47,434 nucleotides of DNA from Macrostomum lignano (GCA_002269645.1 NIVC01003315.1:1-47434); one strand, 5' to 3'. Shown: positions 2,550 through 42,004, numbered from the stretch's first letter. Program-made: numbers and translations. Notes: generated by a model not told the origin, from the sequence alone.

Positions 2550-3700
2550 CAGTGAAGTTCTGTGGCTCTCCTTCTGCTGTTGCGAATGGGGATTCCTGTC
2601 TTGATTTGCTTAATTATGAACTTCACTGACAGAAGCAATTTACAGTTCACAGGCACTGTACGCAGGCACTCACTCACACACACGCTCACACAGGATGTTC
2701 AGCAGCCCTGACTTTCTAATCGTCAGACATGTAGACTCTCTGTGCTCTCTGTTGGCCCTCGTGGCTGCGAATCGCACGGCAACCCACGCCAAATTTTCGT
2801 GCACACAATCCTCAATTCAAGTATTCGAAAACTGGTGTAGAGATCTCCAAACCTAGTAGACTACTAGAAGTAGTAAGATAAAATTACATGTACGAATGCA
2901 AATTTAAAAAAGCATGCGTCATACTCTATTTTCAGTAATACCAGTAATATCACGAAAACAGTGAGTGATCATTCCACAGTTCGAAAAATCAGTTTTCACC
3001 CTATATTTCCAAATATGGTAAATGTTAACTCAAATGCGACCCAAGTTTCACCCTTTTTTATTAGAAACCGCACCGATCAAAGGAGAAAGTTCATTTCTTG
3101 ATTCTTATCAATAAAACCGGTTTAGGGCTCAAGGTCAAATAAAATTGTGTATAATTAAATACAAGCGAAAAATCCGAGCTGAAACCTCAGACTCGGAGCA
3201 GTCAGTTTTTGTTAGTTGATTATTGAGAGCTGTGTTATTGCCGGCAGTTACTGATCAGTTGATTTAACTGAGTTTATTGAATTTGAGGTCTCCTCTTTTC
3301 CTAAGGATAGGATCTGCGGACCGATTCTGATACTCTTAGTCCATTGATTGATTTTGGTACCCTAGAGTAACCGAAGGAGCATTACGACTCCGATTCCTTT
3401 ATTTCTAGTAGAAGACGCCCTTTCTGGAGGACCTCGTTATCGTCATAGAGTTGACTTTGTTATTAGGGCGCATCTCTGCACTCGAGGAATATATTGACGT
3501 CGACGGATTAAATTGAAGTGCTCTCATATTCGGCCGATTTTAAAACTCAAGAAGACTACTCCGGAGGAGGAAGATTTGAAGAAACGAGCTCGGAGAACCT
3601 GCTCAACAAAGAAGCGGAGCCCGCACCACTGATCACTAAATTTCGTTCCCAGGCTTGATGTCTGGAAGTGGAAGTTCGTGCGTTTGGATACTAGACTTAA

Positions 3701-3748
3701 TTCTCCCTCTCTCTTCTCTTTCTCTCTCTCTTTCCATCTCTCTCTCTA
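3701..3748. repeat. (TC)n-rich microsatellite
   Basis: Visible CT/TC run. Confidence 0.8.
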
Positions 3749-4006
3749 GTGTGCTAAAACGAACTCTTCACAAGGTTACAGTCAGCATCTGATCAAACGC
3801 ATACCAACTTAATGCGCATAGGACTGATTATAAACTGGTCCAGCATCTAAAATTTTCAGGACTAAAATGTCAATAGAATTCCTTCATCCAGTACAGAATA
3901 AAAGTACTTTTTAAATTTCGTATTTGATTATATGCGGTCTGGAAAACAGTTTAGGCACTGTATAATTAAAGTACGTTGCATGTATATCCCACGGGTTCAT
4001 TCAAGA

Positions 4007-4044
4007 TTAGGGTTTAGAGTATAGGGTTAGGGTTAGGGTTGGGG
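4007..4044 (+). repeat. Short interstitial TTAGGG-like repeat
   Basis: ttagggtttagagtatagggttagggttagggttgggg. Confidence 0.6.
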
Positions 4045-5093
4045 TATTGCTGAGATTTCTAGACTGATGGGGTATTTGCTAAGATGTCATGGCTCACGGG
4101 GGGAATAGTTGAGATGTCAAGGCTTACTAAGGGAATTGTTAGGGTCATATGAGAGAAGAAAGAATGCTACATGTAGTTTATTAAAAAACTTGTATTCAAT
4201 TTTTGTTGGCCCCGTTGGGGGCGCTGATTGCTAGTATACATCTAATAATAACTGACTACAATGGTTTTCATTAATGAATGAGTATCATGTCTTCTTCCGC
4301 TATCACTTCTTTGAGACGGACTCTTTGAGACATCCTCCGGGGTGCTTGATTGAGATACGCTAGCGCCGTTCCTGTTCGTTCTGGTGCTTGACTGGGTGCT
4401 GCGGACCGCTCCTCCTACCAACGACGATGGTTTTCTGTTGCGGCGACGCGTGTCGACGCCAACCGGAGAGGCGGCTCAGTGTGCTTGGCTACGCCGACGA
4501 TCTTGCCCTGCTGTCCTCGATCGTCGAGGGCGCCCAGCGCCAGCTGGACCGGCTGGTGAGCGTTGCGGCGAGTGTCGGCCTGGTGGTCGACACGCAGAAG
4601 ACCGTTTTACTCTGCGTGCCGGACGACATTCGAGACTTCTATTTTCTGCCGAGGTGCTGACGGGCAGGTGACGAGGCTTCCGCGCTATCAGCAGTTTGTC
4701 TACCCCGGCAGTCCGGTGCCTCACGTTCGCGAGAACCGGCGACGTCTCCGTAGACTTGCCTGGGCTGCTTTCGTTCCGTGAGGATTGTCCTGCAGCCCGT
4801 GGCCCTGCCTCACAGCCAGAGGACGGCGTTGTTCCAGGCGGTGTTCGTGACCGTCCTGTGGTACAATGCCGAGACCTGGACTCTGACGAGTTTGCTCAAA
4901 CAGCAGGTCGATGCAGCGCACGCTGGCCTGCTGCGCGCCGCTTTCAAAGATCGGCTACGAGCATCAATGCGTCAATGCGGCACTCTATCGCCACACCTCA
5001 AATTTGTTGCGCCGTCGGCGACTCCAGCAGGCCAGTTAGGTCATATTATCCGAGCCGAGTCGTACTGCCCGCAACCGGTGCAGGAGCTGGAGG

Positions 5094-5480
5094 TGCTCTC
5101 TCTTTCTCTGCACCGCACACCCCGAAGTCAGCGCTGCTGCGAGGGGCGGGCGGGGCGTCAAAGTTGGCGCCCCAGTCTGCGAAGGAGCCTGAGAACTGCC
5201 TGCGCGTCACAGAGGAGAAGCTCACGATCGGCCGGGCGGGCCGCGTGTACTCTGGGGCAGTCGAAAAGAAGATGCTGCTCGGTGTCCGGGTCCCCGCAGT
5301 CCAGGCACAGCGCGCGGGTTGTCAGACAGGCCAAGCCGATGGCGAGTGGCGGCCGCTTGGAGGCTGCAGCCGGCGCGAAGCGGATTAATGGCCACCTCGG
5401 CCCTTCTGGGTAAAGCTGGCAGTTGTGGCCAGGAGGTTTCTCGGCCCCAGAACTCGAGGTCGAGGTTGGATCTCAGATGG
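5094..5480 (-). mobile_element. 5'-truncated non-LTR element 3' end (I/R1/Jockey-like CCHC finger), antisense inside the RTE
   Basis: Minus strand RRAEVAINPLRAGCSL..RHRLGLSDNP / DCGDPDTEQHLLFDCP..RRLGRQL*, then a GA-rich tail. Flanked by TGGAGG at 5088-5093 and 5481-5486. Confidence 0.65.
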
Positions 5481-8046: not shown

Positions 8047-9352
8047 ACCCTACCAGCGGGGGCAGGCGCGCACTCGGCGTTTCGTCGACTGCCTGCTGGC
8101 TGATGCCGGCGCCCCGGACACTGCCGGCAGTGCGGCCTAAGTTCGCGCCCAGGCCCTGAAACCCGCACAGCAAAATTACGTATCCAATAGAAAGTGGGAC
8201 GTCTCCCGTACGTAACTTTTTTCGTTGCATGAACGTCCTTGATACGTATCAAATTTTTATGATCCTCTAAAGAAGCTCGTTTCTACAAAAGTTGGACTTT
8301 ATTTTCACTGAAAATATTTTTAAACTTTATGACAGAATTTACAAAAAAAGAATAGATAAAAACTAGCAATTAATCTGTTATATTTAGACATTTCAATTTC
8401 GAAAAAGTTAAAAAAATAGTGAAACATTCATTTTTTCCGTAACCTTAAAAAATATGATTTCGGTGTACAGTGCATGTACTGTAGAACAGAAAACTTGCGT
8501 TTTATCTACTAGCAAGTAGTGTTTAGATTTTAAGCAAAATGGTTGATTAAAAGTTGTAAATTGATATTAGAAAGTTTATAAAGTACATAAAAATTTAAAG
8601 ATTAAATTGTAAGACAGAAAGGTTGAAAACGTTATTTAAAAATTTTTTAAACAAAAAGGTAATATTTCAAAAGATTTATTTTAATTCTCATAAATTTTTA
8701 TAATTTAATATATTATTTTCAATAATTATATTTATTAATTTAATAATTTAAATAATAATTAAAATTATTTTGAAATAATATTAAATTATATAACAATTTT
8801 AATAACATTTAAAATTTTTCATTTTACATTTTACATTTCTATAATTTTAATAATTTTAAAAATTTATTTTTAATTTTAAAGGTTACTTTTCGAACAAAAA
8901 GGTACTGTTTCAAAAGATTCTTTTTAATTCTCAAAAAGTGGCCAGTCAAAAAGAAGAATGGATAAATATTTTCCTAAGCCACAAGAAAAGTATATCAAAA
9001 GGAACTTAATTCAAAGCAAAGATAAAAGGGCGGCTGCAAAAAAAATCAAAATTACCCCGGCGAACACTGCAGTGGCAGGATACTGGCTGCACTCGATTAT
9101 CTTTAGAAATGAACTGGATGCCGGCTAAGCTAAGAACCCTCTTCCAAAAAGGGTTTTACCACTGATACCTACTATGCCTTAGGCCGTAAATTTAGTGCTA
9201 TAAACGAGATATTTATTATATTCTTCTAATGCAACATCCCTCGAAAACTAGGTTTCAAGTGATATCTTGTTCTATGTTGTAGTTGGCTGTTCGATTTCAC
9301 AATAAAGATCTTGAAGCAATTTCCTCCTTGATGTCCAGCGATTCACTCTAAC

Positions 9353-10152
9353 TCATTTGCAGTAAGAGTTGGCGACGGCTGCAATGACGACCTTTCCAGC
9401 AGGACCGCTATTGTGCCCATTCGATCCCTCGGGGTTCCTGCCCGATGCGTCCACGAAGCTGCCGCCTCCGCCTCCTCCATCTCCGCTGCTGCTTCCAGTT
9501 CCGCCGCAACCACCGGAGTAGCCGCCGCCTCCGCCGCCGCCGCCTTCACTGTCACTACCGTCTGTGCCGCCGCCTCCGCCGCCTCCGCCGTAGCCACCAT
9601 CGCCGTTGCTGTTTGCGCCGCCTCCCGCCCAGCTTCCGGTGGCGCTCTTTCCTCCATAGCCTCCATCGTCGCCTGTGGGTCCGGAACCTCCAGCAGAGCC
9701 CCAACCAGCACCACTGCCGCCAGACCTGTCAGTGCCCTTGCTGGGACCTCCCTGTCCGACAGTCGAGCCGGAACAAGTGCTGCTAGTGCCATCGCTGCCG
9801 TCTTTTCCCGTGTCCGAGTTGGAGCCATCACCGCCTCCGCCGCCTCCTCCGGCAGCCAGAAGCAGCTGATCAGAGTTACTGCTTCTGGTTATATAGACAA
9901 AGGTTCCGCCTCCACCACCGCCGCCGCCATTAGAGTCGCCATCGCTTCCGGCATCGGTCCCAGACTTTCCCACGACAATCGTGAGCGTCTCAATCAGATT
10001 GAAATAGGCCATTTTGTAAGCTCCCTTGCCTCCAGTTGCACCTTTTGTTGACTGGCCACCGTTGGCGCCCCATGTTTCGATTTTGTAGCAGGTGTTCACT
10101 TCCGGTGGTGTGAAGAATTGCACTAATCCCGTTTTGCCAGTTGTGCCACTCG
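9353..10152 (-). CDS. Terminal exon: ALK/LTK-like glycine-rich domain (gene A, GRD2)
   Basis: Acceptor catttcag|CG at 10153/10152 (phase 1). Intact frame SGTTGKTG..FTPPEVNTCYKIETWGANGG..LTIVVGKSG..GGGGGGGGTFVY..LLLAAGGGGGGG..GKVVIAAVANSYCK*. Confidence 0.8.
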
Positions 10153-11159
10153 CTGAAATGCGGTTGATAGAGTGTGCGTTCAGTGGTAATGCGATTGTAA
10201 AGACACAGAACTGCATGATGTTTTGAATGCAGCTATCAGTATTATCAGACATATATCACAGCCAAGTTATGGCCAAGAAGTCAGAACTAAGAGACCTGCC
10301 GTCACCCAGATTCAAAGGGTGTAGTGCTTGTGTTGACATGCTGTGGCGTTTACGGGGATAGTCATACTATTGTTAATTCTGGCAAAATATTGTTCTACCG
10401 GATGAAATAGATTAACTTAATAAAATATCTGTGTATGTAAATTTAAATGTGGCTTTTGTTAGAGTTTTATAAGTTTCTTGAGTGCTTGCAACCAAGAGTT
10501 TGTGGCGTCTGTGATTCCTGAAGTTTGATTGCAGATCGAATCCTACCTCGCAAAAGTGGAAGGCTTATACCGTATTGCTTCGCTTTTCAATATCTGAGGC
10601 AATTAATTTTTTTAAGAATAAAAATACGAATTTTTGACTCGCAGTCGCTGCTCTGCTGTTAACGCCGAGGTACTGTACACTCAGTCTACTTGTATGAAGC
10701 ACTTGGATTCACTTTGGTATGAGTATGCCAAGCCAGAAAACTTTGACACACGACAGAGTTCTCAAATTTTGTATACATTCAACCAGTTTATGCCACTTCA
10801 TTAAAGCATGAGTATGTCATTATGCTGTCTGTCGCCAAGAGTAGAATTTTAGGTGTAAAATTTATACCCCTCTGCAAAGTAATAACGGCATGCTATGAAC
10901 TTGTGACGCTTAATGAAATGCGCGTAGTAGGCTGTTTCCACAAAGTATCAACTACGTAAATGGCAAAGTGTCTAACGATTGTAGAGGAATCTAAATAGAT
11001 TCAGTAAGTAAATGACATGAAGTAAGGCTTTGACAAGCTATTGATATATACCTCAGCAAGCGCAGAATAGCATGCAGCCAGGCTTTGACAAGCTATTGAT
11101 GTTTACCTCAGCAATCGCCGTTCTTCACCTAAGTCGTAACCTAGATCTTCGAGGGAACA

Positions 11160-13975
11160 ATCGAGGCGCTGTACGAGTTGAGCGACGAGTTGCAACGAAA
11201 CAACAGCGACGCAGCACAGCACTCTCGGCTGCTCGATGAAATAGAAACCGTCGAGGAGGACTACCGCGTCAGCATGCGAGAGGTCCAGCGTTTCCGGCTC
11301 GCACCCGAGACCTCAGAAGATCCGAGGCAGGCCCAGTCACAACAACAGCAGCAACAGCCACACTTGGAAATAGGTGGCTATGGTGAGTTTGGCGACGAGT
11401 TTGCTCCGAACCATGCCAGTAGACCCGAGGCAGAACAAGCTAGCTTAGCGGAGGAACTGCTGGCAGTCAAGGTGCGAGTTCTACGGAACACGAACTGTCA
11501 AAAGAACTTTGGAAGAATGTTGCGTCGAGTTGAAGTTCCTTACCTTCTACGGAGAAAAACAGCAGTACGAGGTGTGGAAGGCAGCGTTCATGGCTTGGAT
11601 CGATAGGGCCGCGCCACACCAGAGTTCAAACTGCTGCAGTTGCGTCAGTATTTGCGTGGATCGGCGCTGAAGGTGATAGAGAGCACTTGGGTCATTCGGC
11701 TGCTGCCGACCAGGCGGCTAAGGAGAGATTGGAGCGTGAGTACGGCGGCAAGCGACGAAAGTTGGCGCACTACTTGGAGGAGCTAGATAGTTTTCCACCC
11801 GTGAAGCAGAATAGTGCCGAGAAGCTGAAGAAATTCGCAAACATCCTCGATGTGGCTGTAATTAATTTGGAAGAAGCTGGTAAGAACTCCTAACTTAGTG
11901 ATGGACTGCTTTATGCTAGATTGCAAAAAAGTTACCAGAGCCGATGGTCGCAGCATTTCGTCGATGGATCTTCGAGAAGGCAAAAGCAGAAGGCGTTAGG
12001 ACCCTTGAGAGTGGGTTTTGCGTGAGGCAGAGTTCCGGACTGAGGCAGCAGAAATTGTGTACGGGTGGCCGCATCAAGTCAGGAGCAACGGCGGCAAGGA
12101 CAGCAAGCAGAAGGCCTTCCATGTAGCGCAGCTAAGCAAGAGCTCAAGCAAGGGGAGCTAATCCTGTGTCGTCTGCAAGGAGACACACGATCTATGGAAG
12201 TGTCCCGCGTTCGGGAAGCTGTCGGCTGAGAACAGATGGAAGGCTGCTCAGGAAGTCAAAGCCTGTTTCCGCTGTCTTGGCCATGGTCACATCGGTATGA
12301 ACTGCCGACGAGGTGGAAAGTGCGGCGTTGATGGTTGCAGAAAATTCCACCATCGTCTGCTGCATTCGACAACAAGGTCGGAATCGAAAGAGAAGCCAGA
12401 AGGCAAAGCCGGCGCTGAGCAAGAAATGCAGTCGAAGCCGAAAGCTGCAACCGTGACAATGGTAGCTAGAGAAGCCAGTGCGGTTTCACTTCGAACGGTT
12501 CCGGTCATTCTTAAGGCGAATAGGCGAGCTGTGAAGATCAATGCCTTACTTGATGACGCCAGCACAAAGACCTATTTGAATACGGCGATAGCATCCAAGC
12601 TGCTGGAGGCCTGCACGGCAAACAGGAATCAATGCAGGTAAACGTGTTGAACGGACAGGTGGAAACCTTCATAACAGCACCAGTGTCATGCACCTTGGAG
12701 AGTACTGACGGCCAAATAAGCAAGGAGATTACTGCGCTGACGGTAGATAGAGTGACCGGGAGCATGGAAGTAGTAGATTGGCAAAAATTGGCGTCGAAAT
12801 GGTCGCACTTAGGAAACATTCCGTTTCCAAGAAGGCAAACATCAGCGGAGGTTGACTTGCTGATCGGAGCTGATCACACCGACTTGCATGCGTCGCATCT
12901 AGAAGTGTGTGGCAAGCCTGGAGATCCGCAAGCCCGTCTAACACCTTTAGGTTGGACCTGCATTGGCAAGGTTGATGGAGCTTCGGAACGCTCTTTATTT
13001 GCGAGCACATTCTTCAGCGGAGGCGAATTCGAGAACTTGGCCCCATTGTTGCGCCAATGCTGGGAAGTTGAAGAGCTTCAGCGGGTGGAGTCACCTTCAT
13101 TCACGAATTCAGAGCAGCTTGCCCTGGAATGCACTCGATCATCGCTGAAGTTCATTGACGGGCAATACCAGGTTGGGTTTCCATGGGAACCGGATGCCAA
13201 GCTACAAGACAACAACTTCGAGATGGCCATTAAGCGGCTTGGAAACTCTGAGAAGCGGCTCCTCAAGGATCTGGAAATAGCCAAAAAGTACCAGGACGTC
13301 ATCAATCGCTGCGAGAAAGTAGGTCACGTCAGAAGGGTGCTGCAGAATGAGCATCAGGCTATGAAAAGGTACTACCTTCCGCATTTCCCAGTGGTGGCAA
13401 CGCGTGCAGTTCATTTAAAAATGGCGTATGGCCTTGATACAAGCAGCTTCCTAAACTCGTTGTTTCGCATGATCAGTCGCCGAGGTCAAGTTCTGGAAAT
13501 CTTCTCAGACAATGGAACTGATTTTGTTGGTGCAGATAGAGAACTAAAGGAGCTGTGCAAGTCGATGGACAAGAACGCATTGCAGTCATGCACATCTTAC
13601 GTACCGATCAAGTGGCACTTTAATTCGCCTGCGGCTCCGCACTTCGGCGGTGTGCATGAGTCAATGATAAATTTAACAAAGAGGGCGATAAATGCGATCT
13701 TGAGAACGGCAGAAGTCAGCGATGAACAGCTTGTAACAGCATTTGCCGGAGCAGAGCCGCTGCTGAACTCGCGACCTTTGACCTACCAGTCGTCCCATCC
13801 TGGCGACGATCCGGTCCTGACGCCAGCGCACTTCCTGTACGGGCATGTCGGCGGACAGCTGGCACCAGAGACCGCGGCTGACGAGGTGTTCAACCCAACC
13901 AAGAGGTAGCGCTACGTGCAGCAGCTGGTGCAGTCCTTTTGGCGGCGATGGCTCCGAGAGTGGCTGCCAGCTAGT
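11160..13975 (+). mobile_element. BEL/Pao LTR retrotransposon, internally deleted and frameshifted
   Basis: Gag-like segment (11600-11900), three Cys/His knuckles (CVVCKETH, CFRCLGHGHIGMNC, CGVDGCRKFHHRLLH), protease INALLDDASTKTYL, RT start YYLPHFPVV joined directly to integrase ATRAVHL..FSDNGTDFVGA..PHFGGVHE..LLNSRPL, ending FWRRWLREWLP. Confidence 0.9.
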
Positions 13976-14119
13976 GAATAGCATGCAGTCAGGCTCTGAC
14001 CTCAGCAAGCAAACATCTCGATCAAAATACCAAGTGCACTTCCGCTCTTTCATGTCAGACCTGACAAAGTGATTTGCCTTTGAGGGAACAAAAATTTAAA
14101 ATAGCTATATATTACTTAC

Positions 14120-14946
14120 AGGTAAATGTCACCGGAATAGAGGCGTTGATTTCGCAATAGGAACTGGCGACGGCTGCAATGACGACCTTTCCAGCAGGAC
14201 CGCTGTTGTGCCCATTCGATCCCTCGGGTTCCTGCCCGATGCGTCCACGAAGCTGCCGCCTCCGCCTCCTTCATCTCCGCTGCTGCTTCCAGTTCCGCCG
14301 CAACCACCGGAGTAGCCGCCGCCTCCGCCGCCGCCGCCTTCACTGTCACTACCGTCTGTGCCGCCGCCTCCGCCGCCTCCGCCGTAGCCACCATCGCCGT
14401 TGCTGTTTGCGCCGCCTCCCGCCCAGCTTCCGGTGGCGCTCTTTCCTCCATAGCCTCCATCGTCGCCTGTGGGTCCGGAACCTCCAGCAGAGCCCCAACC
14501 AGCGCCACTGCCGCCAGACCTGTCAGTGCCCTTGCTGGGACCTCCCTGTCCGACAGTCGAGCCGGAACAAGTGCTGCTAGTGCCAGCGTTGCCGTCTTTT
14601 CCCGTGTCCGAGTTGGAGCCATCACCGCCTCCGCCGCCTCCTCCGGCAGCCAGAAGCAGCTGATCAGAGTTACTGCTTCTGGTTATATAGACAAAGGTTC
14701 CGCCTCCACCGCCGCCGCCGCCATTAGAGTCGCTATCGCTTCCGGCATCGGTCCCAGACTTTCCCACGACAATCGTGAGCGTCTCAATCAGATTGAAATA
14801 GGCCATTTTGTAAGCTCCTTTGCCTCCAGTTGCACCTTTTGTTGACTGGCCACCGTTGGCGCCCCACGCTTCGATTTTGTAGCAGGTGTTCACTTCCGGT
14901 GGTGTGAAGAATTGCACTAATCCCGTTTTGCCAGTTGTGCCATTCG
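14120..14946 (-). CDS. Internal exon: ALK/LTK-like glycine-rich domain (gene A, GRD1); 1-nt deletion at ~14226
   Basis: Near-identical to 9353-10152. Acceptor catttcag|CG at 14947/14946. AACCCGAG here versus AACCCCGAG in the twin. The corrected frame ends SYCEINASIPVTFT-T|GTAAGT (donor at 14119, phase 1). Confidence 0.7.
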
Positions 14947-15139
14947 CTGAAATGCGGTTGATAGAGTGTGCGTTCAGTGGTAATGCGATTGTAAAGACAC
15001 AGAACTGCATGATGTTTTGAATGCAGCTATCAGTATTATCAGGCATATATCGCAGCCAAGTTATGGCCAAGAAGTCAAAACTAAGAGACCTGCCGTCGCC
15101 CAGATTCAAAGGGTGCTTGTTGTTGACGCTACTTTGTAG

Positions 15140-15350
15140 CTATCGACCCGCGCGATACCATCAATGACCACTGGAACCCTGGTGAGCTCCATTGCCACAC
15201 CGACGGTTCTAAGCAGTCAGTCAACACCGGCTTTGATGTTGGAATTTTCCTGAACGGTAGGGTCATCGCACCCACGCCCAGTATACTTGGATCAACTCCT
15301 GTGTCTTCCAAAATGAAGTTCTTGCTATCAGTTCCTGCAGTGTAGTGCTT
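15140..15350 (+). mobile_element. Non-LTR retrotransposon RNase H fragment in the intron of gene A
   Basis: LHCHTDGSKQSVNTGFDVGIF..ILG / NSCVFQNEVLAISSC matches the YTDGS..G.G..TVFQAE..AI pattern of non-LTR RNase HI. Confidence 0.6.
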
Positions 15351-16196
15351 CTCGTCACTTGTGTTGCTGGTAAGAACATCATTTTCTGCAACACTGCGGC
15401 ATTGGTCTCGTTTTCTACTCTAAGTTCACTCATAGACCGTGTCGGACAACTTAGAATGCTGTCGATATAATTTAATAATTATTACCTTGATTCAGCACGA
15501 ATAAGCAAACAAAAAGTGCAAGTCCCTATTAAGCTGCGGAGAGGTGGGTCAGATAAGTATGTGCCCGATCAATCAAGCTGTGGAAGCTTTTGATTCAACC
15601 AGTCGGATACTCAACCTGCTGGTGAGTAAACTGTGGGAGTCTACAGCGACCGAGGCTGCCGTCGAGGCTGCGACAGAGTGCTGCTGTCGATCTAGTCGAA
15701 GTCATTTCTCACTATTCACCTGTGCTGTAGGTCCAAAAAGACTTTGTTGATTGGATGCTAAAGGGGAAAAGGCCGAAATCCTTAGGAGAAGGGAGGGGGA
15801 AAGCAGCGTCAGACAGCGAGAATTGAACGGAGTTTCAGTGGTTGGAGCAACGGGTGTCAACTGTCGACGCGAGCAACGCCTCTGATTGGCTGCTTAAGGT
15901 CCCAAAAGCCACCCGATCACCTGCTTTCTTTCTACCTCTTTGAGGGCAAGAATTTAAATTTTTTGGCTCCAATCGCTGTCACGAAATGATTTACAACCGT
16001 AAAATTATGTAAAAATTGCATTTCTAAAAAGAGTTTGAAGTGACAGTGAATTACATGTGGAACAATACTTCTATTAAATACAGTAAGAATTCCATAATCC
16101 CAGAGAAAAATTGGCAAAAATATGATTACGGCCTACTGCCAGTAGCGTATACTGTACCATTTAAATATAAATTTTTTAAACCCTGCTTCTGCCTAC

Positions 16197-17672
16197 CATT
16201 AAAGATGACCGACGACATAGCCGTCGTTTTTGTAGTCGTAGTGGTCATATTTTGAGTCGTGGTGGGGGTAGTCCAATTTGAAGCTGTAGTAGTCGAAGCC
16301 CCTGTGGTCGTAGTCGGAGCCTCTGTGGTCGTAGTCGGATCCCCTGTGGTCGTAGTCGGAGCCCCTGTGGTCGTAGTCGGAGCCTCTGTGGTCGTAGTCG
16401 GAGCTTCTGTGGTCGTAGTCGAGCCCCTGTGGTCGTAGTCGGAGCCCCTGTGGTCGTAGTCGGAGCCCCTGTGGTCGTAGTCGGAGCCCCTGTGGTCGTA
16501 GTCGGAGCCTGTGGTCGTAGTCGGAGCCCCTGTGGTCGTAGTCGGAGCCCCTGTGGTCGTAGTCGGAGCCCTGTGGTCGTAGTCGGAGCCCCTGTGGTCG
16601 TAGTCGGAGCCCCTGTGGTCGTAGTCGGAGCCCCTGTGGTCGTAGTCGGAGCCCCTGTGGTCGTAGTCGGAGCCCCTGTGGTCGTAGTCGGAGCCCCTGT
16701 GGTCGTAGTCGGAGCCCCTGTGGTCGTAGTCGGAGCCCCTGTGGTCGTAGTCGGAGCCCCTGTGGTCGTAGTCGGAGCCCTGTGGTCGTAGTCGGAGCCC
16801 CTGTGGTCGTAGTCGGAGCCCCTGTGGTCGTAGTCGGAGCCCCTGTGGTCGTAGTCGGAGCCCCTGTGGTCGTAGTCGGAGCCCCTGTGGTCGTAGTCGG
16901 AGCCCCTGTGGTCGTAGTCGGAGCCCTGTGGTCGTAGTCGGAGCCCCTGTGGTCGTAGTCGGAGCCTCTGTGGTCGTAGTCGGAGCCCTGTGGTCGTAGT
17001 CGGAGCCCCTGTGGTCGTAGTCGGAGCCCTGTGGTCGTAGTCGAGCCCTGTGTCGTAGTCGGAGCCCCTGTGTCGTAGTCGGAGCCCTGTGGTCGTAGTC
17101 GGAGCCCCTGTGGTCGTAGTCGGAGCCCCTGTGGTCGTAGTCGGAGCCCCTGTGGTCGTAGTCGGAGCCTCTGTGGTCGTAGTCGAAGCCCCTGTGGTCG
17201 TAGTCGGAGCCCCTGTGGTCGTAGTCGGAGCCTCTGTGGTCGTAGTCGGAGCCCCTGTGGTCGTAGTCGGAGCCTCGGTGGTCGTATCTGAAGTCGCAAT
17301 CGGAGTCATGGTGTTCGGAGCCGTAGTAGTCATCGAAGTAGACTCACAATCTGCTCTGGTTCGCAGCACCTGCGTGTTGCAGACCGGCCCGCTACTGAGC
17401 TGCCAGTAAAGCAGCAGGTCGCAGCTGTCTCCCAGAATGCATGACCGGTTGCTAGGCAAGTACTCATAGACTGAGCACAGGGCCGTGTTGCTCGCGCATT
17501 CGACAGCGCACACTCGAGCATCGGCAACACCGAGCACTGTGCGCTGACCGCTCGCAGCAGTCACAGCATTGTAGCACAGGTCCGGCCTCTTGTCGAAGAC
17601 AAAGGTAATCGTGGCTGTAAGTGAAATTAGAACTGCCAATATAATGGCAGTTCTGAAAAGACATGTAGACAT
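16197..17672 (-). CDS. Gene A exon 1: signal peptide + PAN/apple-like domain + (GAPTTTT)48 mucin stalk
   Basis: Hydrophobic leader MSTCLFRTAIILAVLISLTA; PAN-type Cys spacing CAVECASNTALCSVYEYLPSNRSCIL; Thr repeats; ends SSVIFN-G|GTAGGC (donor at 16196). Frameshifts are confined to G/C runs of the array. Confidence 0.75.
16289..17290 (-). repeat. Coding 21-bp tandem array, 48 units (GGGGCTCCGACTACGACCACA = GAPTTTT)
   Basis: Unit starts were counted at a 21-bp period. Ten units are short, by 13 nt in total. Confidence 0.95.
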
Positions 17673-18380
17673 TAATTAATTCTGGCTGATAAAGCAAGCT
17701 GCAAATAAACACCGACTGTGTAAGCGGAGGTATTAGTGAGTGAGGCTAAGTTGATGCAGCAACTTTAGCTATTTCTAGCCGTCATTCGTACGTGCGCTTC
17801 ACCCACCTCATCGGCCTGGACAAGGTCTCCAGCACGGAGAAACTACGGAGTAAATAAGTTTTGTTACCGAGGTAACTCAGTTTAAATGATGTACGTACAG
17901 AATTTCTATAGCCTCAACTTGAGTTGCAATGCAGTCAATGCAGCCCATCTGTAGGTTAGAGCAGAAGTCAAAGAGGCATATCTCTATGCGCATTCTTGAG
18001 AATCTGCTTCCCATGCCTAGTTAATTCCTTACGCTGCAGGTAAAAAAAGCATAGCTTAACTGCAGGGATGTAGAGACCAACTCCCGCACTAAGAAAAGTT
18101 TTCTAGCTGTTCTAGTGCCTGCTTCTCTGTGGGTGGAAGCTAACTAAGCTGCAACATGTTTTAAAGAGCTATTGTTCTTTACACCTCACTCCCTTAACTA
18201 TCGACAGTCATGTTAGGGCTTGGTTTGACTTTCTACTGATACCTCGGCCAGTCAGTCCCCACAAAAATACCACCTCCATTAGAATTATCCATTACAAAAA
18301 TTACAACTTTATTGCTTGCTCTATCGGTTTCAATCCTCATTTTTTAACCTCTTGGTTCACCAACCATCTCCTGAATGTCC

Positions 18381-18543
18381 AGAGCAACCAGAGCCGCCTG
18401 CTGAGCACCGAAAGCCTTCTGAACACCGAAAGCCTCCAGAGCAGTCTGCTGAGCACCGAAAGCCTCCAGAGCAGTCTGCTGAGCACCGAAAGCCTCCAGA
18501 GCAGTCTGCTGAGCACCGAAAGCCTTCAGAGCAGTCTGCTGAG
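18381..18543. repeat. 30-bp tandem repeat (4 full copies plus partial)
   Basis: GAGCACCGAAAGCCTCCAGAGCAGTCTGCT-type units at 18421, 18451, 18481 and 18511. Confidence 0.9.
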
Positions 18544-18770
18544 AAGTTTAAATCGCCTGTTGTCATTTCTTCATAGTCCTTGAACACCATTAAGCCGAAA
18601 ACTTCACTACAAGCCCAGGCAGCTTTCTTCACTTCGTGTCACGCCGTTAAAACAGTCATGCCCCAATTGGCCTTTTTTCTCGTCGTCACAGGAGCACTCT
18701 CCAGCATTACTCGGTCAATCGCTTCATTTGACATAATCTTGAATCGGGCTTCTTCGGGCTTCTCCAGTCC
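18530..18770 (-). mobile_element. Probable Crypton/DUF3504-type tyrosine-recombinase N-terminal remnant
   Basis: RFKIMSNEAIDRVMLESAPVTTRKKANWGMTVLTA*HEV...DYEEMTTGDLN resembles the RF..S.E.I.......P.NT.K.T.W....F..W and M...ELN pattern recalled for Crypton-derived proteins. The TGA at 18639-18641 falls where Trp is expected. Confidence 0.45.
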
Positions 18771-21228: not shown

Positions 21229-24200
21229 TTAATTAGTCAGCCTGTCAATGAGCTGCCGCAGCACGATGTTGCGCGTCCTGCCGCTCGAAGCTCGCACCTT
21301 GACGCCCTCTGCAATCTGCGCATGACTCAGAGCCACGCAGACCTGGCCATGTTGATAGCAGGCCATCGCCAGGTCAACGGCGTAGGTGCTCAGCGTCTGG
21401 CCTTGGCTATGGTGGATGGTCATGGCGAAACACAATCGGATCGGGAACTGCAGGCGGCGGAAGGTGAAGGGCAGCTCGGTTGGACCCGACTCCTGTTGGA
21501 TCCGCGGGATAAAAACCTGCCGCCCGTGGTAGCTGACGCCCGTGGCGACCTCCGAAAGCAGTACGTTGTCCCGCAGTTCGCGAAGCAGCAGCCGGGTCTC
21601 GTGGCACATCAGCGGAGGGTCCAGATTCCTCGTCATCATGACCGGCATGCCGACCTTCAGCTCTAACCGGTGATGTGGCAGGCCGTTGGAGTCCAACCGG
21701 TTCAGCAGCTCCGGTAGGGAAGTTGCTCGCTGCCCCATCGTCGTGCGGAAATTGAGTCGACCGACAGGTAGACCCGACTCTCACCGGGAAGCAGCGCCAA
21801 GCAGGTGACGTTGGCTTCGTCCAGGGTCTTGTTGAGCGGTCTTATCTTGCTCCGCGTACATCTGGTTGGTTCAAACGATGGTTAGACGTGCCGGATGAGC
21901 TACTAGTTGTGTCCTCAGGCTTGAAAATAAATTCAACATTCAGCGTTCAAGCTCAAGTTTTTCGATAGATCTTGGTTAATTCTAAAATAAGGTTGTAGTG
22001 TGCGTACGCACGGTATCTTAGCCCAAAGTGTACGCCCGGGCGGTCTGATTGGCTGCAGAGCGGGGTGGGTGCCGCCACCCCAATTCTAGCTCTAAATATA
22101 TAGATGTGTGCCCAGCGCGGCGAGAGTGTAAGAGTTTCGACTACACCGCAAACACGGCCTCTGTCTCAGTTACTACAAGGGTTAAAGGAAATTCACCTGA
22201 TCTGGCTCAACACGTGGCTCAGGCAGTCCGTAGGCAAGCAGCTCAGTTCCTCCCATGGTGTCCAGCAGTGTCTACAGCTCTCGCTAAACCTCCAACTCGG
22301 CAGCCTCTGGGCTATAGCCTTAGTCTAGCAGATCAACTCGCCGGAGAACTTCTGCCACAGCTTTGCAGGGTCGCTGGGGCCGCCTGCATGGCGACACAAA
22401 ATGGCAGCGAAAAGGCGGCGCAGAGCCGCTGGCAACCGCGTCTCCGTGGCTTCGCACAGGCAAAGTCACCATGGTGCCTGTCGTCTTCCAGCAGTCCACG
22501 AGTCTGGCAGGCGGCAGCAGTCCTCTGAAGGTCGGCAGCAGGACGCCATCAACGGTGCGCAACGCCTCGAATGACGTCGGGCCTCGAACATTCACCAGCA
22601 GCAGGCGCAGGCAGAAACTGTCTCCCGTCCGAGGGCTAACTGTGTAGACGCGGCCGTTGTTGCCAGTCGTCAGCACGCCAGCTGGCTGATCGGCAGTCTC
22701 TCGGCTGTGCCTCGCGCGATGCCACTGGTGCGCCCTGTTGTCTCAGGTGAAGTTCCGGGGTACCTCCTGGTACAGCAGGTCTCGCGCAACTGCATCCTGG
22801 TCGTCCTTCAGGCTGATGAAGGGCCAGTCTGATGACAGCCGGATACCGACTGTTCATGTGCACTTAAAAGCCCAAGATGGTGCTGACCACCTCCATGGGA
22901 CTAAAGTACCCGCCCAGAAGGTGCTGCCTGACTTGCGCTTCGCTGGCGCCGCCTTGGTCTGAGCTGACTGATGGGGCTGCTGATCGCCACTTTCCTGAAG
23001 AGCCGCCGCGTCGCTAGCCGTAGTAGCATGGCTGTCGGCCTTCGCATCAGCAGCAGCAGCTAGCTCCTTCCGGACTTGGAATTCGCTGCCCTTAAATATA
23101 AGGGTACCGACGTAGTTTAACGCCTTGACTGTCGCACAGATCTAGACGTTCAGGTGAGACCTAAACTCGTGCAGCAGCACAGGGCAGTAAGCACGACCTA
23201 GCGCGGTTTGCCTTCTGACCGCCGCGCAGCTTTGCGACCTTGGCCACCGAGAAGCCGCTTATCTAAGTTAATATGCGATGATAGTGCGGGTAGCCGTCCT
23301 CTTGAATCATGGTGACTGCCTAGAACTCTCTCGGATAGCGCTTGCTACATGCGCCATTCTCCATGCACGACGCGTCTGGATTCAGCTGCATTACACAGGG
23401 ACCATGTGTTGTATTTTCTGCTTCCGTCCGTGCGGACCGCAGACGGGCTGATCAGGGGTTCGGGTACTGGACTGCCCAGAGCTTGCCAGGTGGGATAGGC
23501 GAGAGAGTGGCGACCCCCGAGGCGTACGAACACTTCGAGGTGGAGGTGGAGAGGCTGGGAGCGTACAGACACTCGGCCAGCCCCACGGAGAGAGGGAGAC
23601 GCAGATGAGGAGGCTGTGAGCAGGTAGCCACTCAGCAGCAACAGCAGAGGTGAGCACGGGTCTGGAGGCGTACAGACACTTCGCAGACCCGAAGGAAGAC
23701 GGTGGCGAGAGAGGTAAATAATGAAGGCGGGACAAATTAACGAAAGCGAACGCTGTCTTACCGGGCGGGGTCACTTGTCGCGCTGATGCAGGCGTGGCCT
23801 CTAATATCTCAGCCTCAGTTGACTGTATTTCAATTTCAAGCTTCACTTTCACTCAAACACGTGTAGAGCTAGAGTTGTAGAGAGAGAGCAGGGAGGGCGA
23901 GAGCCGGGCGAGGGCCGCGCGCGCACATAAATACTGGGTGAGCACTGAGCAGGGGACTGGGGAGGGCTTAGCCACGCAGGGCTGGGGGTGGGGGCAAAAC
24001 TCACAGAGTTGAAGGGCGAGAGGGAAGGCTAGCCAATCAGGTGCCTCCGCGGCGAGACACATGATTGGACTAGCCCACGCGAGAGAGAGAGATGAAAATA
24101 CGCCAGCCAATGAAAATGTGGGCTGATGAAAGTGAGAACAAAAAATGAATAGCAGCTTTAGACGGAGGGGGCAAGCCAGAAAAAACCAGTGGCAGGGAGA

Positions 24201-26678: not shown

Positions 26679-26944
26679 CCTGTTACCGACCTCCAGCTCA
26701 TTTCTGAGATAATCAGCGCCAAAAAGTGTTTAGCCAATGATAAACACTACAAGTAATGGCCTTGAGCCTGCCAATTTAGTGCTACAATGAGATATTTAAC
26801 ATTCTTCCAATGCAATATCCCTCGAAAACTATGGGTTTTGATTGGATTTTGGTTCGATGTTTTAGTTGGCTGTTCGATTTCACAATGCTTCCTTATCTTA
26901 GAGCAATTTATTCATTGATGTCCAGCGTTTAACTCCTTAACTTC

Positions 26945-27738
26945 TTAGTTGCAGTTGGCACGAGCGACGGCTGCAATGACGACCTTTCCAGGAGGACCGC
27001 TGTTGTGCCCGTTCGATCCCTCGGAGTTCCTACCCGATGCGTCCACGAAGCTGCCGCCTCCGCCTCCTCCAACGCCGCTGCTGCCTGATCCGCCGCAACC
27101 ACCGGAGTAGCCGCCGCCTCCGCCGCCGGCGCCTCCGCCGCTACCGTCTGTGCCGCCGCCTCCGCCGCCTCCGCCGTAGCCACCATCGCCTTTGCCGTCT
27201 GCGTCGCCTCCCGTCCAGCTTCCGGTGGCGCTCTGTCCTCCATAGCCTCCATTGTTGCCTGTGGGTCCGGAATCTCCAGCAGAGCCCCAGCCAGCTCCAC
27301 TGCCGCCAGACCTGTCAGTGCCCTTGCTGGTACCTCCCTGTCCGACAGTCGAGCCGGAACAAGTGCTGCTAGTGCCATCGCTGCCGTCTTTTCCCGAGTA
27401 CGAGCTGGAGCCATCACCGCCTCCACCGCCTCCTCCGGCAGCCATAAGCAGCTGATGCGAGTTACTGCTTCTGGTTATATAGACAAAGGTTCCGCCTCCA
27501 CCGCCGCCGCCGCCGTTATTGCTGTGATCACTTCCTGAGTTGGTCCCAGACTTTCCAACGACAATCTTGAGCGTCTCGGTCAGATTGAAATAGGCCATTT
27601 TGTAAGCTCCTTTGCCTCCAGTTGCACCTTTTGTTGACTGGCCACCGTTGGCGCCCCACGCTTCGATTTTGTAGCAGGTGTTCACTTCCGGTGGTTTGAA
27701 GGATTGCACTGATCCCGTCTTTCCAGTTGTGCCACTCG
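26945..27738 (-). CDS. Gene B exon 2: ALK/LTK-like glycine-rich domain
   Basis: Acceptor cacttcag|CG at 27739/27738 (phase 1). Intact frame SGTTGKTGSVQSFKPPEVNTCYKIEAWGANGG...GKVVIAAVARANCN*. Confidence 0.85.
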
Positions 27739-29067
27739 CTGAAGTGCGTTTGATAAGGGATGAGCGCTCAATTGAAATCCATTACGTGTACATTCTAGAA
27801 GTCGCTAAATGTACTCTAACACTTCGCGGAAAATGTATTTACAATCTGAGCATTAAAAGTATATTTAGCCTGCGAATGGCTGCTGGATGTGCTGCTTGTT
27901 CATTACTGACAAGACAATGTCTTGTCGATTTGAGTGACAGAGATCGATTTCGCTTGTTGGTCATTTGCAGCCCTTATGGTTTGGTTTTCTCACTAAGTTT
28001 CCTCACAGAACCTGTCGAAGCACTCAAATTTCTCAAAGCGCAACTAATCATATTCTCAACCTGCAGGTGACCTTGGATTCCACAGTCATATCGAGGCTTC
28101 TAGACAGGGTGACAGCTACTGCTGACAAATTACCAATGACTTTTCTTTTTTTGAGCAGTAATGATGGGGAGCCAGGAGAAAAGAACGATGTTTCAGGGGT
28201 TGCTGCACCGGGTGTCAATGCGATCAAAGTCTCTGAACTTGCCGGAGTATCCTGTTTCAGCAAATAAATGAACAGAAAACAATGTAAAATTTTGCACTCA
28301 AGGTAAATAATCAAGCGGAAGGAACAGAATATGAAGATGGGAAGATTTGGGCTGATCCCAGAGAATTCCTGTGGTACAAAACAGATCTATTGAAGCTTTT
28401 AAGCGTCTAAGAAACTCATAAACATGTACCGGGTATGCAGGCTCTGATCGATCCTATACAACTCATGATGACCCATCAATAAGCACGTGTGGACTTGAAA
28501 CTTATATACATATGTTTGCAATAATATGTAAGAATCGTCTCCTAGAAAGAGTGCAAAGGTGACAGAGAAAAACATAATTAACAAGTCTTATATATTACTT
28601 TAAGAAATAGCTCCCAAATCAGAGAGAAAAATGACAAAAATTAACTGCCAGTAGTCAATACTGCACTTAGGCCAATATGCGAATGTAGAATTTGAAAAAA
28701 ATTTGCATCATCATGATCGGTTCTTTCTTTAACTCCCTGGTCCCTGATTCATACATGCGCCGGCATTTCGACAGATGAAATTCCTCTAGGGAGAGACTAT
28801 ACGCTCGTACTATTCCATAGGTAGAAGAGGATATGATGTACAATATTATTATACATGTACAGCCAGTAAGGCATAAATGATGTACTTCGTTTCATTTATG
28901 CTTTTATCAGCTTTGACTCCACTAAGAGAGAAAAAGTAGTGGCGTAAATAAATGTGTGCATATAAATTTTCTACACGCCGATTGCTTGAAAAATATATAC
29001 CAAGATTTCTCAACGCCTATTATATAGCATTAATTATACAAACAGAAACATTAAAAATTCCGCCTAC

Positions 29068-29494
29068 CATTAAAGACGACCATCGGCGTTGCAGTAGTTG
29101 AGGTCGTAGTCGAAGTCGTAATCGGAGTCGTAGTGGTCGGAGCCGTAGTAGTCATCGAAGTAGTCTCACAATCTGCTCTGGTTCGCAGCACCTGCGTGTT
29201 GCAGGCCGGCCCGGTGCTGAGCTGCCAGTAAAGCAGCAGGTCGCAGCTGTCTCCCAGAATGCATGACCAGTTGCTAGGCAAGTACTCATAGACTGAGCAC
29301 AGGGTCGTGTTGCTCGCGCATTCGACAGCGCACACTCGAGCATCAGTAACCCTGAGCACCTTGCGCTGACCGCTCGCATCAGTCGCAGCATTGTAGCACA
29401 GGTCCGGCCTCTTGTCGAAGACAAAAGTCAGTGGAGATGTAAGTGAACCCAGAACTGCCAGTATAATGGCAATTCTGAGAATACTTGTAGACAT
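29068..29494 (-). CDS. Gene B exon 1: signal peptide + PAN/apple-like domain + short Thr stalk
   Basis: MSTSILRIAIILAVLGSLTS leader, the same Cys pattern as gene A, TTT-rich linker, and end MVVFN-G|GTAGGC (phase 1, donor at 29067). Confidence 0.85.
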
Positions 29495-37400: not shown

Positions 37401-38251
37401 GAGGTCAAGGGTGCCAAACTCGGGGGAGTGGTCAGGCAAACTTTAGAGGGGTGCAATGCAAAACTTCAAGGGGGTCAGGGTGCCAAACTTCAGGGGAGGT
37501 CAAGGGTGCCAAACTTTAGGGGAGGTCAAGGGTGCCAAACTTCAGGGGAGGTCAAGGGTGCCAAACTTTAGGGGAGGTCAAGGGTGCCAAACTTCAGAGG
37601 TCAAGGGTGCCAAACTTCAGGGGAGGTCAAGGGTGCCAAACTTCAGAGGTCAAGGGTGCCAAACTTCAGAGGTCAAGGGTGCCAAACTTCAGAGGTCAAG
37701 GGTGCCAAACTTCAGGGGAGGTCAAGGGTGCCAAACTTCAGAGGTCAAGGGTGCCAAACTTCAGAGGTCAAGGGTGCCAAACTTCAGGGGAGGTCAAGGG
37801 TGCCAAACTTTAGGGGAGGTCAAGGGTGCCAAACTTCAGGGGAGGTCAAGGGTGCCAAACTGTACCTAAACTGGTTCAGCTGTGCCAATTTTTTCTCATT
37901 AAATATGGCCAGATTGCTAATAATGCGCCCCTCAGGTTGCGGTGACTGTGGCTGGCAGATTCGGCCGCATTCTGCTCGAGCTGGGCGGCAACAATGCCAT
38001 CCTGGTGAACGCCGATGCGGATCTGGACATGGTTGTGCAGTCAGCCGTCTTCGCCTGCGCCGGCACCGCCGGTCAGCGCTGCACCTCAACCAGGCGGCTG
38101 GTGCTACACAGCTCCGTGCACGATCAGGTCGTGTCCCGGCTGGGCAAGGCGCTGGAGTCGCTCATGGCCAAGGCTGGCGATCCTGTTGAACAGGGCGTGC
38201 TGTACGGCCCGCTACACTCGCCTGCCTCCGTGGAAAAGTGAGTTCTGTCTG

Positions 38252-38284
<33 letters not shown>

Positions 38285-38377
38285 CAGTGTCTGTCTGTCT
38301 GTCTGCCTTTCTGTCTGTCTGTCTGTCTGCCTTTCTGTCTGTCTGTCTTTCTGTCTGTCTGTCTGTCCGTCTGGCTT

Positions 38378-38408
<31 letters not shown>

Positions 38409-41830: not shown

Positions 41831-42004
41831 CCCAAGTATTCATCAAATGCGCAACTTAACCGAAATATCTGGGGTCCGTTTTCAATCTGTCTTCCCCTTA
41901 CCTACTGCAGACTAATTTTACTGAAAATAGGCAGTTCTTGAAGACCCAGTTTTTCTGTAGTTAAAATGCAACACTTCTTTAATTTCTCTTTCAAGACTTT
42001 GGAA

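Follow-up and report, generated by a model that had tools for sequence, protein, structure and literature searches.

The gene A locus

The window analyzed here is a stretch of 47,434 nucleotides (nt) from the flatworm Macrostomum lignano (contig NIVC01003315.1 of assembly GCA_002269645.1), and its main subject is gene A, which occupies positions 9353–17672 on the minus strand. As judged from its sequence, gene A is a genuine, unannotated member of a small flatworm family of secreted proteins in which a PAN domain is combined with a glycine-rich domain (GRD) of the kind known from ALK and LTK. A first exon encoding a hydrophobic N-terminus, the PAN domain, and a long Thr-rich array is followed by two copies, a and b, of a GRD exon (Table 1). 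Two relatives lie in the same window, namely the intact gene B and the diverged gene C. The features reported in a preliminary description of the locus, including the exon ends and phases, the 48-unit array, and a joined coding sequence of 1489 + 828 + 800 nt for 1038 amino acids (aa), were all reproduced at the same coordinates.

Exon 1 runs from the ATG to TCT TTA ATG|GTAGGC (donor AATG|GTAGGC, phase 1). The only hydrophobic 19-residue window of the 1038-aa protein falls within residues 1–28, a putative signal peptide, which is consistent with the earlier proposal of a secreted protein carrying no kinase or transmembrane segment. The Pfam family PAN_1 (PF00024) scores 22.9 bits with the 146-aa N-terminus and 24.2 bits with a 95-aa segment, above the cut-off of 21.4, so that the PAN identity given to this region in the preliminary description is upheld; PAN_1 is also matched by gene B. 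A core of four to six conserved cysteines is ascribed to PAN/Apple domains in PMC9249922. In an alignment of five family members, seven cysteines are invariant, including C32, C36, C43, and C55 and the flanking C10 and C75, and the gene A domain contains the pattern C-x3-C...C-x-[AV]-[FY]...C-x-[LM]. More distant comparisons were less informative. A profile of the five PAN domains matched the PAN region of plasminogen weakly (E 0.11, at ECAAKCEEDEEFTCRAFQY...QC), and an AlphaFold2 (AF2) model from the five-sequence alignment reached a predicted local distance difference test score (pLDDT) of 48.9 and had no Foldseek match at E < 1, the PAN entries 6ryv, 2yip, and 6i58 appearing only in the noise. 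Searched alone, the PAN-containing N-terminus of gene A found no close homologue at E ≤ 10 in a database of 5.8 billion proteins.

The array that follows the PAN domain was recovered by Tandem Repeats Finder (TRF) as a 21-bp unit in 48.1 copies with 95 % matches and 2 % indels, and its reading frame is set by continuity with the PAN domain and the exon end. Residues 114–495 of the repaired protein consist of 55 % Thr and 13 % Pro and form a tandem-repeat region of the mucin type, rich in proline/threonine/serine (PTS).

Two observations concern the region just upstream. A 30-bp repeat (18419–18543, within region 18316–18632) has an open frame for PPEQSAEHRK four times over. Acceptor-like sites (...tttatytgcag / ...cag) lie 13–27 nt before the ATG of both gene A and gene B (17673–17770 and 29495–29600) and could, from their sequence, be spliced-leader trans-splice sites.

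Table 1. Predicted features of gene A and its surroundings, listed in the direction of transcription of the gene
Feature	Position	Strand	Basis
5′ flank (promoter/5′ untranslated region)	17673–17937	−	blastn, 17280–17937 vs 29102–29744 (gene B), 82.6 %
Exon 1: ATG, hydrophobic N-terminus, PAN, Thr-rich array, tail TTAMSSVIFN	16197–17672	−	Open reading frame; donor position and phase matched in P0251 and P0255
PAN/Apple domain, about residues 27–110	17343–17594	−	Pfam PAN_1; Cys pattern C-x3-C-x6-C...C-x-L-G common to four paralogues
Array of 48 × 21 bp coding for (G/E)APTTTT, mucin-type Pro/Thr-rich spacer	16289–17286	−	TRF, unit census, composition
Intron 1, 1250 nt; last 169 nt within the duplicated unit	14947–16196	−	Splice-site sequence, blastn
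GRD exon a, 827 nt as assembled, 828 nt if CCC at 14226–14228 is CCCC	14120–14946	−	Sequence, comparison with copy b
Duplicated unit, copy a: intron tail and GRD exon to the conserved C-terminal Cys codon	14151–15115	−	blastn, 97.8 % over 966 nt
Putative intron 2, 3967 nt, with antisense retrotransposon remnant	10153–14119	−	Splice-site sequence, open reading frames
Remnant of a BEL/Pao-type long terminal repeat (LTR) retrotransposon	11010–14000	+	DUF1759, 26.1 bits vs 25.4; open reading frames; short terminal repeats 11010–11118 / 13976–14000
Duplicated unit, copy b	9356–10321	−	blastn vs copy a
GRD exon b, intact, ends VANSYCK + TGA (9353–9355); ancestral terminal exon	9353–10152	−	Open reading frame, AF2, Foldseek, phmmer
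3′ untranslated region homologous to that of gene B; AATAAA 9217–9212	9144–9352	−	blastn, 9144–10169 vs 26719–27755, 87 %; poly(A) signal scan

Identity and fold of the glycine-rich domains

Both GRD exons begin at the same kind of acceptor, tttcag|CG in phase 1, at 14946 and 10152. When the GRD was compared with the PDB by phmmer, the only matches were LTK (7nx0, E 1e-4) and seven ALK entries, covering residues 4–72 and 62–237 of the query, and the alignment takes in the TNF-like strands as well as the Gly runs. An AF2 model of GRD b built with 48 homologues reached a pLDDT of 89.2 and a predicted template modeling score (pTM) of 0.90. Searched with Foldseek, this model returned ALK/LTK TNF-like/Gly-rich (TG) domains, including the invertebrate ALK GRD 7lir, at all of ranks 1–21 (E 8e-11 to 8e-5; query TM-scores, TMq, 0.51–0.71; about 300 aligned columns), and the match at rank 22 had an E of 0.19. 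Residues ~101–237 of the model have a pLDDT of 71–95 (10-residue block means) without any helix or strand called by DSSP, and 17 Gly positions are invariant across the 48 homologues. Both features would fit, indirectly, a polyglycine-II helix lattice formed by the Gly runs.

The sequence comparisons and the model thus assign the GRD of gene A to the ALK/LTK TG fold, and the phmmer and Foldseek matches mean that the naming of the domain in the preliminary description is right at the level of the fold. The Pfam cut-offs are narrowly missed. ALK_LTK_GRD (PF12810) scores 11.7–22.4 bits against 24.5 on the GRD copies of the window, and Gly_rich_2 scores 18–20 against 24.3; the cut-off of ALK_LTK_GRD is passed by the paralogue P0246 (42.7 bits) and by many homologues found with gene B. 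The shortfall was treated as a limit of profile sensitivity for these sequences and not as an exclusion.

A possibility raised at the outset was that the GRD exons belong to a receptor with further transmembrane or kinase exons. No such exon lies downstream on the gene A strand, and the window encodes just one kinase, of the Aurora-like Ser/Thr type, 24 kb away and on the opposite strand. Gene A is not an ALK-type receptor, because its product has one hydrophobic segment, GRD b is followed by a stop and a conserved 3′ untranslated region (UTR), and there is no kinase.

A recent duplication of the GRD exon

The two GRD exons arose, as their sequences indicate, by a recent, local duplication of 0.97 kb. 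The duplicated unit begins 169 nt inside the upstream intron and reaches as far as the conserved C-terminal Cys codon, and the copies stand 4.8 kb apart. They differ by 21 substitutions and by their 3′ ends. Within the coding part, 10 changes are non-synonymous and 6 are synonymous, giving a ratio of non-synonymous to synonymous divergence (dN/dS) of 0.33 with a dS of ~0.04, and the Gly positions that are invariant in the 48 homologues are all kept in both copies. The ~95 nt proximal to the acceptor are identical between the two exons, of which exon a is reached first by the spliceosome.

Copy b keeps the ancestral stop and 3′ UTR, both common to gene B. In copy a, the Cys codon is followed by 31 novel bases, which encode the tail EINASIPVTFT and run into the donor ACCT|GTAAGT at 14120 in phase 1. 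After repair of one base, GRD exon a is therefore a symmetric phase 1–1 exon of 828 nt. By a rough estimate, an in-phase GTAAGT within 13 codons of the breakpoint has a chance of ~0.6 %. A poly(A) signal scan found no AATAAA or ATTAAA within 500 nt downstream of GRD a.

The retrotransposon remnant between the copies contains a gag-like DUF1759 match, a stretch resembling a Cys-His zinc knuckle (by eye), and a 425-aa pol fragment. This fragment has an integrase-like DNGTDF...PHFGG motif with no Pfam match, and the reverse transcriptase is missing. Full LTRs were not found around the remnant, only repeats of 25–53 nt. No further copy of the spacer 10322–14150 was found in the DNA compared.

Taken together, these observations suggest a history for the gene. 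The ground plan of the family would be a signal peptide, a PAN domain, and a short Thr-rich linker in one exon, a phase-1 intron, and a terminal exon for the TG module. In gene A, the linker would recently have grown to 48 near-identical (G/E)APTTTT units, predicted to form an O-glycosylated spacer of ~380 residues. The 0.97-kb piece would have been copied, also recently, to a site 4.8 kb upstream of the original, with a BEL/Pao remnant now antisense between the copies, and the upstream copy would have gained the 11-codon tail that leads into the in-phase GTAAGT donor.

Frame-breaking indels and assembly quality

Fourteen bases have to be restored before gene A can be read throughout. A unit census showed that ten units of the array are too short and that 13 bases are lacking among them; every change is a deletion, with no insertions, and falls in a G4 or CC run. 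The remaining base is in GRD exon a, which has one C fewer than copy b (CCC vs CCCC). With the 13 array bases restored, the exon end VIFN is back in frame with the ATG, and with all 14 restored the exons form one open reading frame of 3117 nt, which encodes 1038 aa and has its only stop at the end. No repair is needed for (G/E)APTTTT to be read at either end of the array in frame with the unique sequence next to it. To make the 14 corrections is to assume assembly errors, which were not themselves observed.

The assembly was produced by Canu from PacBio reads and polished only by Pilon with Illumina and RNA-seq reads (PMC5730564). Indels survive such polishing in long perfect repeats and recent duplicates, and the deletions-only, homopolymer-only pattern of the array fits a failure of short-read polishing in a near-perfect array of 1 kb. 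About 350 residues of ALDH7A1 encoded on the contig are 100 % identical to BOX15_Mlig003190g1 with no frameshift, which indicates that the assembly errors are confined to repeats. Nor was any frameshift seen across ~4 kb of coding sequence contributed by ALDH7A1, the Aurora-like kinase, gene B, GRD b, and exon 1 outside its array. The gene A indels are probably uncorrected PacBio homopolymer deletions, and the single frameshift of GRD a is less safely an error than those of the array.

Paralogues and distribution of the PAN+GRD family

Gene B (29494→26945, minus strand) is intact and has two exons encoding 406 aa, in which a putative signal peptide and a PAN domain are followed by a Thr-rich linker of 25 residues and a single GRD. 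Genes A and B have the same donor, AATG|GTAGGC, and the same acceptor, cag|CG, and in gene B an AATAAA follows the stop by 33 nt. Gene C is a third, diverged GRD exon (1839→~1090, minus strand), ~49 % identical to GRD b; its acceptor is in phase 1, and its frame is interrupted by a TGA. A PAN exon for it was not found in the window, and it is probably a relic. The UniRef fragment P0319 seems to be an intact relative from elsewhere in the genome.

Annotated paralogues in M. lignano were recovered only by an exhaustive HMMER search with gene B, a word-indexed search with the same query being swamped by Gly-rich bacterial proteins. P0251 (BOX15_Mlig019850g1/g2; PAA61162.1 / PAA91998.1; UniProt A0A267H149; 403 aa) is listed as an "Apple domain-containing protein", and P0255 (BOX15_Mlig028980g1; PAA57358.1; 373 aa) has the same PAN+GRD architecture. 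P0253 and A0A1I8IMG2 likewise belong to M. lignano and to this architecture, so that the public databases hold at least three such paralogues; the fused or fragmentary WormBase-type models P0241, P0246, P0319, P0387, and P0388 were also matched. The annotated paralogues are 38–44 % (PAN) and 43–50 % (GRD) identical to gene A, compared to ~85 % for gene B. They share with gene A the signal peptide, the PAN Cys pattern, the phase-1 intron, and the full TNF-like and Gly-rich module; unlike gene A, with its 48-unit array and duplicated GRD exon, they carry only one GRD, and their linker is short or missing.

The loci of P0251 and P0255 reveal a common gene structure. In both, a phase-1 intron (AATG|GTGAGA...CAG|AT in P0251, TATT|GTGAGC...CAG|CG in P0255) stands right before a single terminal GRD exon, which ends in Cys, one or two residues, and the stop. 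Gene A as exon 1 joined to GRD b follows this structure, as do gene B, P0251, and P0255; GRD a, with its tail and donor, departs from it. No extra GRD copy was found within 6–8 kb of the P0251 and P0255 loci. For the junction of exon 1 to a GRD, proposed in the preliminary description, this homology is the strongest support, the introns of these two annotated paralogues matching it in place and phase. The UniRef model P0241, which comes from an older assembly and connects the linker with the GRD, was considered as additional junction evidence and dropped, as its linker frame is wrong and its donor lies 13 nt upstream.

On present evidence, the combination of PAN and GRD appears from sequence searches to be confined to the flatworm lineage of M. 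lignano, which fits the lineage-specific origin proposed earlier. A profile of the family PAN run on ~270 other GRD proteins found only the weak fragment P0319 (E 4e-4); this profile missed the Pfam PAN_1 match of P0246 and is not sensitive to other PAN domains. The view that the architecture was unknown holds only in part. PAN+GRD proteins are already in NCBI and UniProt as "hypothetical" or "Apple domain-containing protein", and tandem GRDs occur in Monosiga, metazoan-looking, and bacterial proteins. A literature search returned no paper in which PAN, Apple, or glycine-rich proteins are reported for Macrostomum or the paralogue gene identifiers are mentioned; it returned no mention of PF21722/ALK_LTK_GRD, and the sole mention of PF12810 concerned a fungus.

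In the NCBI transcript-based annotation of NIVC01003315.1 (the part 24457–47434), no gene is called at gene B. Searching for annotation around gene A through exact products of the transposon open reading frame and of a Pif1 open reading frame found nothing. As a sign of decay, the missing annotation of gene A is uninformative, because the intact gene B is unannotated as well.

Turnover of the family is visible nearby. A homeologous contig (NIVC01003940.1:44037–68646) is collinear with 23746–47434 of the window at ~96 % identity, and its counterpart of gene B (locus ~3200–5100) has no equivalent of 27391–28345, which holds the acceptor and the first ~115 GRD codons (the first third). The GRD remnant of that counterpart is 97.9 % identical to GRD a of gene A, which, as far as sequence identity can tell, suggests gene conversion between family members. 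Together with the broken gene C, the dN/dS of 0.5–0.7 between genes A and B, and the TATAAA that is interrupted in gene A, such turnover near the locus tempers strong functional claims.

Interpretation of the gene A product

The reading that we tentatively prefer is that gene A encodes a predicted protein of 1038 aa with the order signal peptide, PAN, mucin-type spacer, GRD, GRD, and that its frameshifts are PacBio homopolymer deletions. Splicing that joins both GRDs is favored because exon a is symmetric, its acceptor is identical to that of exon b, its GTAAGT donor is in phase, no poly(A) signal is near, the transposon lies antisense, and the copies combine a dN/dS of 0.33 with retention of the Gly positions. 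Of the tandem arrangement claimed in the preliminary description, the two exons with compatible splice sites stand; their joint product is plausible but less secure, given a recent 966-bp duplication, a family of single-GRD proteins, and the need for frameshift repair.

Several observations weigh against the tandem product. First, all exon junctions of gene A are predictions from the sequence and the paralogues. Second, as no frameshift occurs outside repeats in the rest of the coding sequence, the CCC of GRD a may be real, in which case the reading frame would stop at 14129, before the donor. In the other long arrays of the contig, moreover, the unit-length variants look genuine and show no clean pattern of single-base deletions by which the error model could be borne out independently. 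Third, left unspliced, GRD a reads TGT AAG TAA, that is, CK and a stop, like the usual C-terminus of the M. lignano PAN+GRD family, and a single GRD is found in every other family member examined. Fourth, no protein near-identical to the product of gene A or gene B was found in the 5.8-billion-sequence database, and gene A is unannotated. Fifth, dN/dS between genes A and B is 0.72 for the PAN domain and 0.53 for the GRD, and the TATAAA located ~95 nt upstream of the gene B ATG, which is kept in the gene B homeologue, is CTA--AAG in gene A.

Some of these points would be accommodated by a functional gene with a single-GRD protein, which is possible though rather unlikely. Exon 1 would be joined to GRD a, or past it to GRD b, or to either in alternative use, and the other copy would be a silent by-product. 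Reading through GRD a would give a protein of 774 aa ending in ...SYCEINASIPVTFTCK and the stop; use of GRD b would give 762 aa. Such products would agree with the one terminal GRD exon of all paralogues examined, with the family-like C-terminus of unspliced GRD a, and with the ancestral stop, 3′ UTR, and AATAAA kept by GRD b, and the very young age of the duplication (dS ~0.04) would have left little time for selection of a new architecture. The splice signals point the other way, as the acceptor region of GRD a is identical to that of b and is transcribed first, its GTAAGT donor is of consensus type and in the right phase, and no poly(A) signal is near it. Skipping of an 828-nt exon with good splice sites would also be unusual.

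It is unlikely that gene A is a pseudogene, that is, a decaying duplicate in which some of the frameshifts are real and which would make at most a truncated peptide of PAN and scrambled repeats. The contrast between 14 frame-breaking indels in gene A and none in ~4 kb of coding sequence outside repeats would be explained in this way, as would the lack of a gene model in a transcript-based annotation, the disrupted TATAAA-like motif, and a dN/dS of 0.5–0.7 between genes A and B. Decay is also seen nearby, in gene C with its stop and no PAN exon and in the gene B homeologue without an acceptor. The pattern of the lesions argues otherwise. All 13 array indels are homopolymer deletions that jointly restore the frame, such errors are what the assembly method predicts in a perfect array of 1 kb, and neither stops nor indels occur in GRD b (800 nt) or in the unique sequence of exon 1 (380 nt). 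All Cys and invariant Gly are kept, and the intact gene B likewise has no gene model.

It is very improbable that the tandem GRD is a false one, created when Canu merged haplotypes or homeologues differing by a transposon insertion. The neopolyploid genome of M. lignano is notorious for the difficulty of its assembly, a homeologous contig of 96 % identity does exist, and GRDs look exchanged, the remnant on NIVC01003940.1 being 97.9 % like GRD a in a gene B context. The duplication, however, lies in the middle of the contig and spans 4.8 kb, well under PacBio read length; the copies differ in their 3′ ends and by 21 substitutions; and the junction of copy a is unique, being absent elsewhere in the DNA compared.

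Hardly credible, finally, is the idea that these are exons of an ALK-like receptor or that the protein is a decoy for an ALK ligand. In its favor, ALK and LTK are the only PDB matches to the fold of the GRD, and UniProt names related fragments "receptor protein-tyrosine kinase" automatically. Against it, GRD b is followed by a stop and a conserved 3′ UTR, and no EGF-like, transmembrane, or kinase exon lies on the gene A strand. Pfam detects no kinase domain in the automatically named proteins of M. lignano, the identity to ALK amounts to only 24–27 %, and the ALKAL ligands are known as a vertebrate family. A role of the gene A product as an ALK-ligand decoy is accordingly unlikely.

Comparison with known systems and possible function

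Compared to ALK and LTK, the GRD of gene A has the same overall fold as the TG supradomain (7NX0, 7N00, 7LS0, 7MZY), in which the terminal beta-strands flank a long region of Gly runs, at an identity of 24–27 %. The N-terminal CGxxGRxGP...C segment of ALK and LTK, seen also in P0242, is not present in the GRD of gene A, and this GRD is not expected to bind ALKAL-type ligands. In the ectodomain of the ALK family, the GRD region is ligand-binding and is followed by EGF-like, transmembrane, and tyrosine-kinase parts (PMC10605310), all three of which gene A is without.

Non-receptor GRD proteins are known from bacteria, where the GRD is an extracellular module of secreted or surface proteins and is accompanied by adhesion-type domains (PKD, HYR, Ig-like, or FN3) and by type IX secretion system (T9SS) or PEP-CTERM tails. 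Tandem GRDs are present in XP_001748072.1 of Monosiga brevicollis (P0249), which has four, and in P0242, which has five together with EGF repeats and a transmembrane segment. These stand-alone and tandem GRD proteins are 39–55 % identical to gene B in phmmer alignments and have no mucin array of the gene A kind. When BLAST is corrected for composition, GRDs of bacteria score no closer than those of eukaryotes, both at ~40 bits, and there is no case for horizontal transfer from bacteria.

Two observations on these database entries are worth recording. P0242, a Logan contig product of 2116 aa, has five ALK-like GRDs each after TCGxxGRxGP, about ten EGF-like repeats, a transmembrane segment, an NPxY tail, and no kinase; its sequence resembles that of a type I membrane protein of a metazoan. 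UniProt gives the name "receptor protein-tyrosine kinase" to P0241, P0246, and P0249; in Pfam, P0246 has PAN_1 and a GRD fused to IFT140 and no kinase, and P0241 is a GRD fragment of 157 aa. The signature of the ALK GRD seems to have spread these names too widely.

A closer parallel in design is LET-653 of Caenorhabditis elegans, an apical matrix protein whose PAN domains and C-terminal domain bind different matrix pools (PMC4970718). As in gene A, an N-terminal PAN part is separated by a putatively O-glycosylated PTS spacer from a C-terminal matrix module. LET-653, however, has two PAN domains and a ZP domain at its C-terminus where gene A has the GRD, and the two are related in sequence only in the PAN part, so that the likeness is one of design and not of homology.

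By this analogy, the favored role is one of tethering or cross-linking, in mucus, a secreted coat, or a gland product. The gene A protein would be secreted (the leader is clearer in P0251 and P0255) and heavily O-glycosylated. A stiff mucin rod would hold apart the PAN end, which may bind proteins or glycans, and one or two rigid polyglycine-II/TNF-like modules, which may bind a second partner. In this manner the protein could tether or cross-link components of the extracellular coat, mucus, or glandular secretions. A bolder proposal is that the ALK/LTK fold serves flatworms as a free secreted module, that gene A presents it double-headed on a mucin rod opposite the PAN domain and acts in mucus, adhesive, or reproductive secretions through polyglycine-II/TNF-like recognition, and that the family may derive from a bacterial-type stand-alone GRD and not from an ALK receptor; we regard this proposal, taken as a whole, as speculative and improbable.

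Significance

The TNF-like/Gly-rich module is familiar above all as the part of ALK and LTK that binds ligand (PMC10605310), and the flatworm PAN+GRD family places it in a fast-evolving, kinase-free setting. The locus opens no long-standing question, as PAN+GRD and tandem-GRD proteins are already public, if uncharacterized. What is new is the gene itself, the mucin expansion, and the possible double GRD; the PAN+GRD paralogues and tandem GRDs were already in the databases. The locus would capture a change of domain architecture in progress, with a young exon duplication, a transposon between the copies, and an in-phase donor ready for use. It also has a practical bearing on annotation, since two genes, A and B, are missing from that of M. 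lignano, and the UniProt name "receptor protein-tyrosine kinase" is misleading for proteins that have only a GRD. RNA interference and in situ hybridization are established in M. lignano. As transgenesis is available too (PMC5730564), the species is a tractable system for studying what a GRD binds in the absence of a kinase.

Other features of the window

The remainder of the window holds two further genes and several repeats. ALDH7A1 (BOX15_Mlig003190g1) occupies 34743–38826 and the Aurora-like Ser/Thr kinase 41966–45200, both on the plus strand. Long minisatellites pack the introns of these genes, with a 19-mer at 35224–36122, a 26-mer at 37276–37861, (TCTG)n at 38244–38507, a 14-mer at 38925–39701, a 13-mer at 41028–41828, and a 35/140-mer at 42484–43791. 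On the minus strand, 21229–21738 is an open reading frame with a match to the Pif1 2B domain (E 9e-13), probably a fragment of a Helitron or of a Pif1-like helicase. A short interstitial stretch of telomere-like (CCCTAA)n is located at ~4005–4040.

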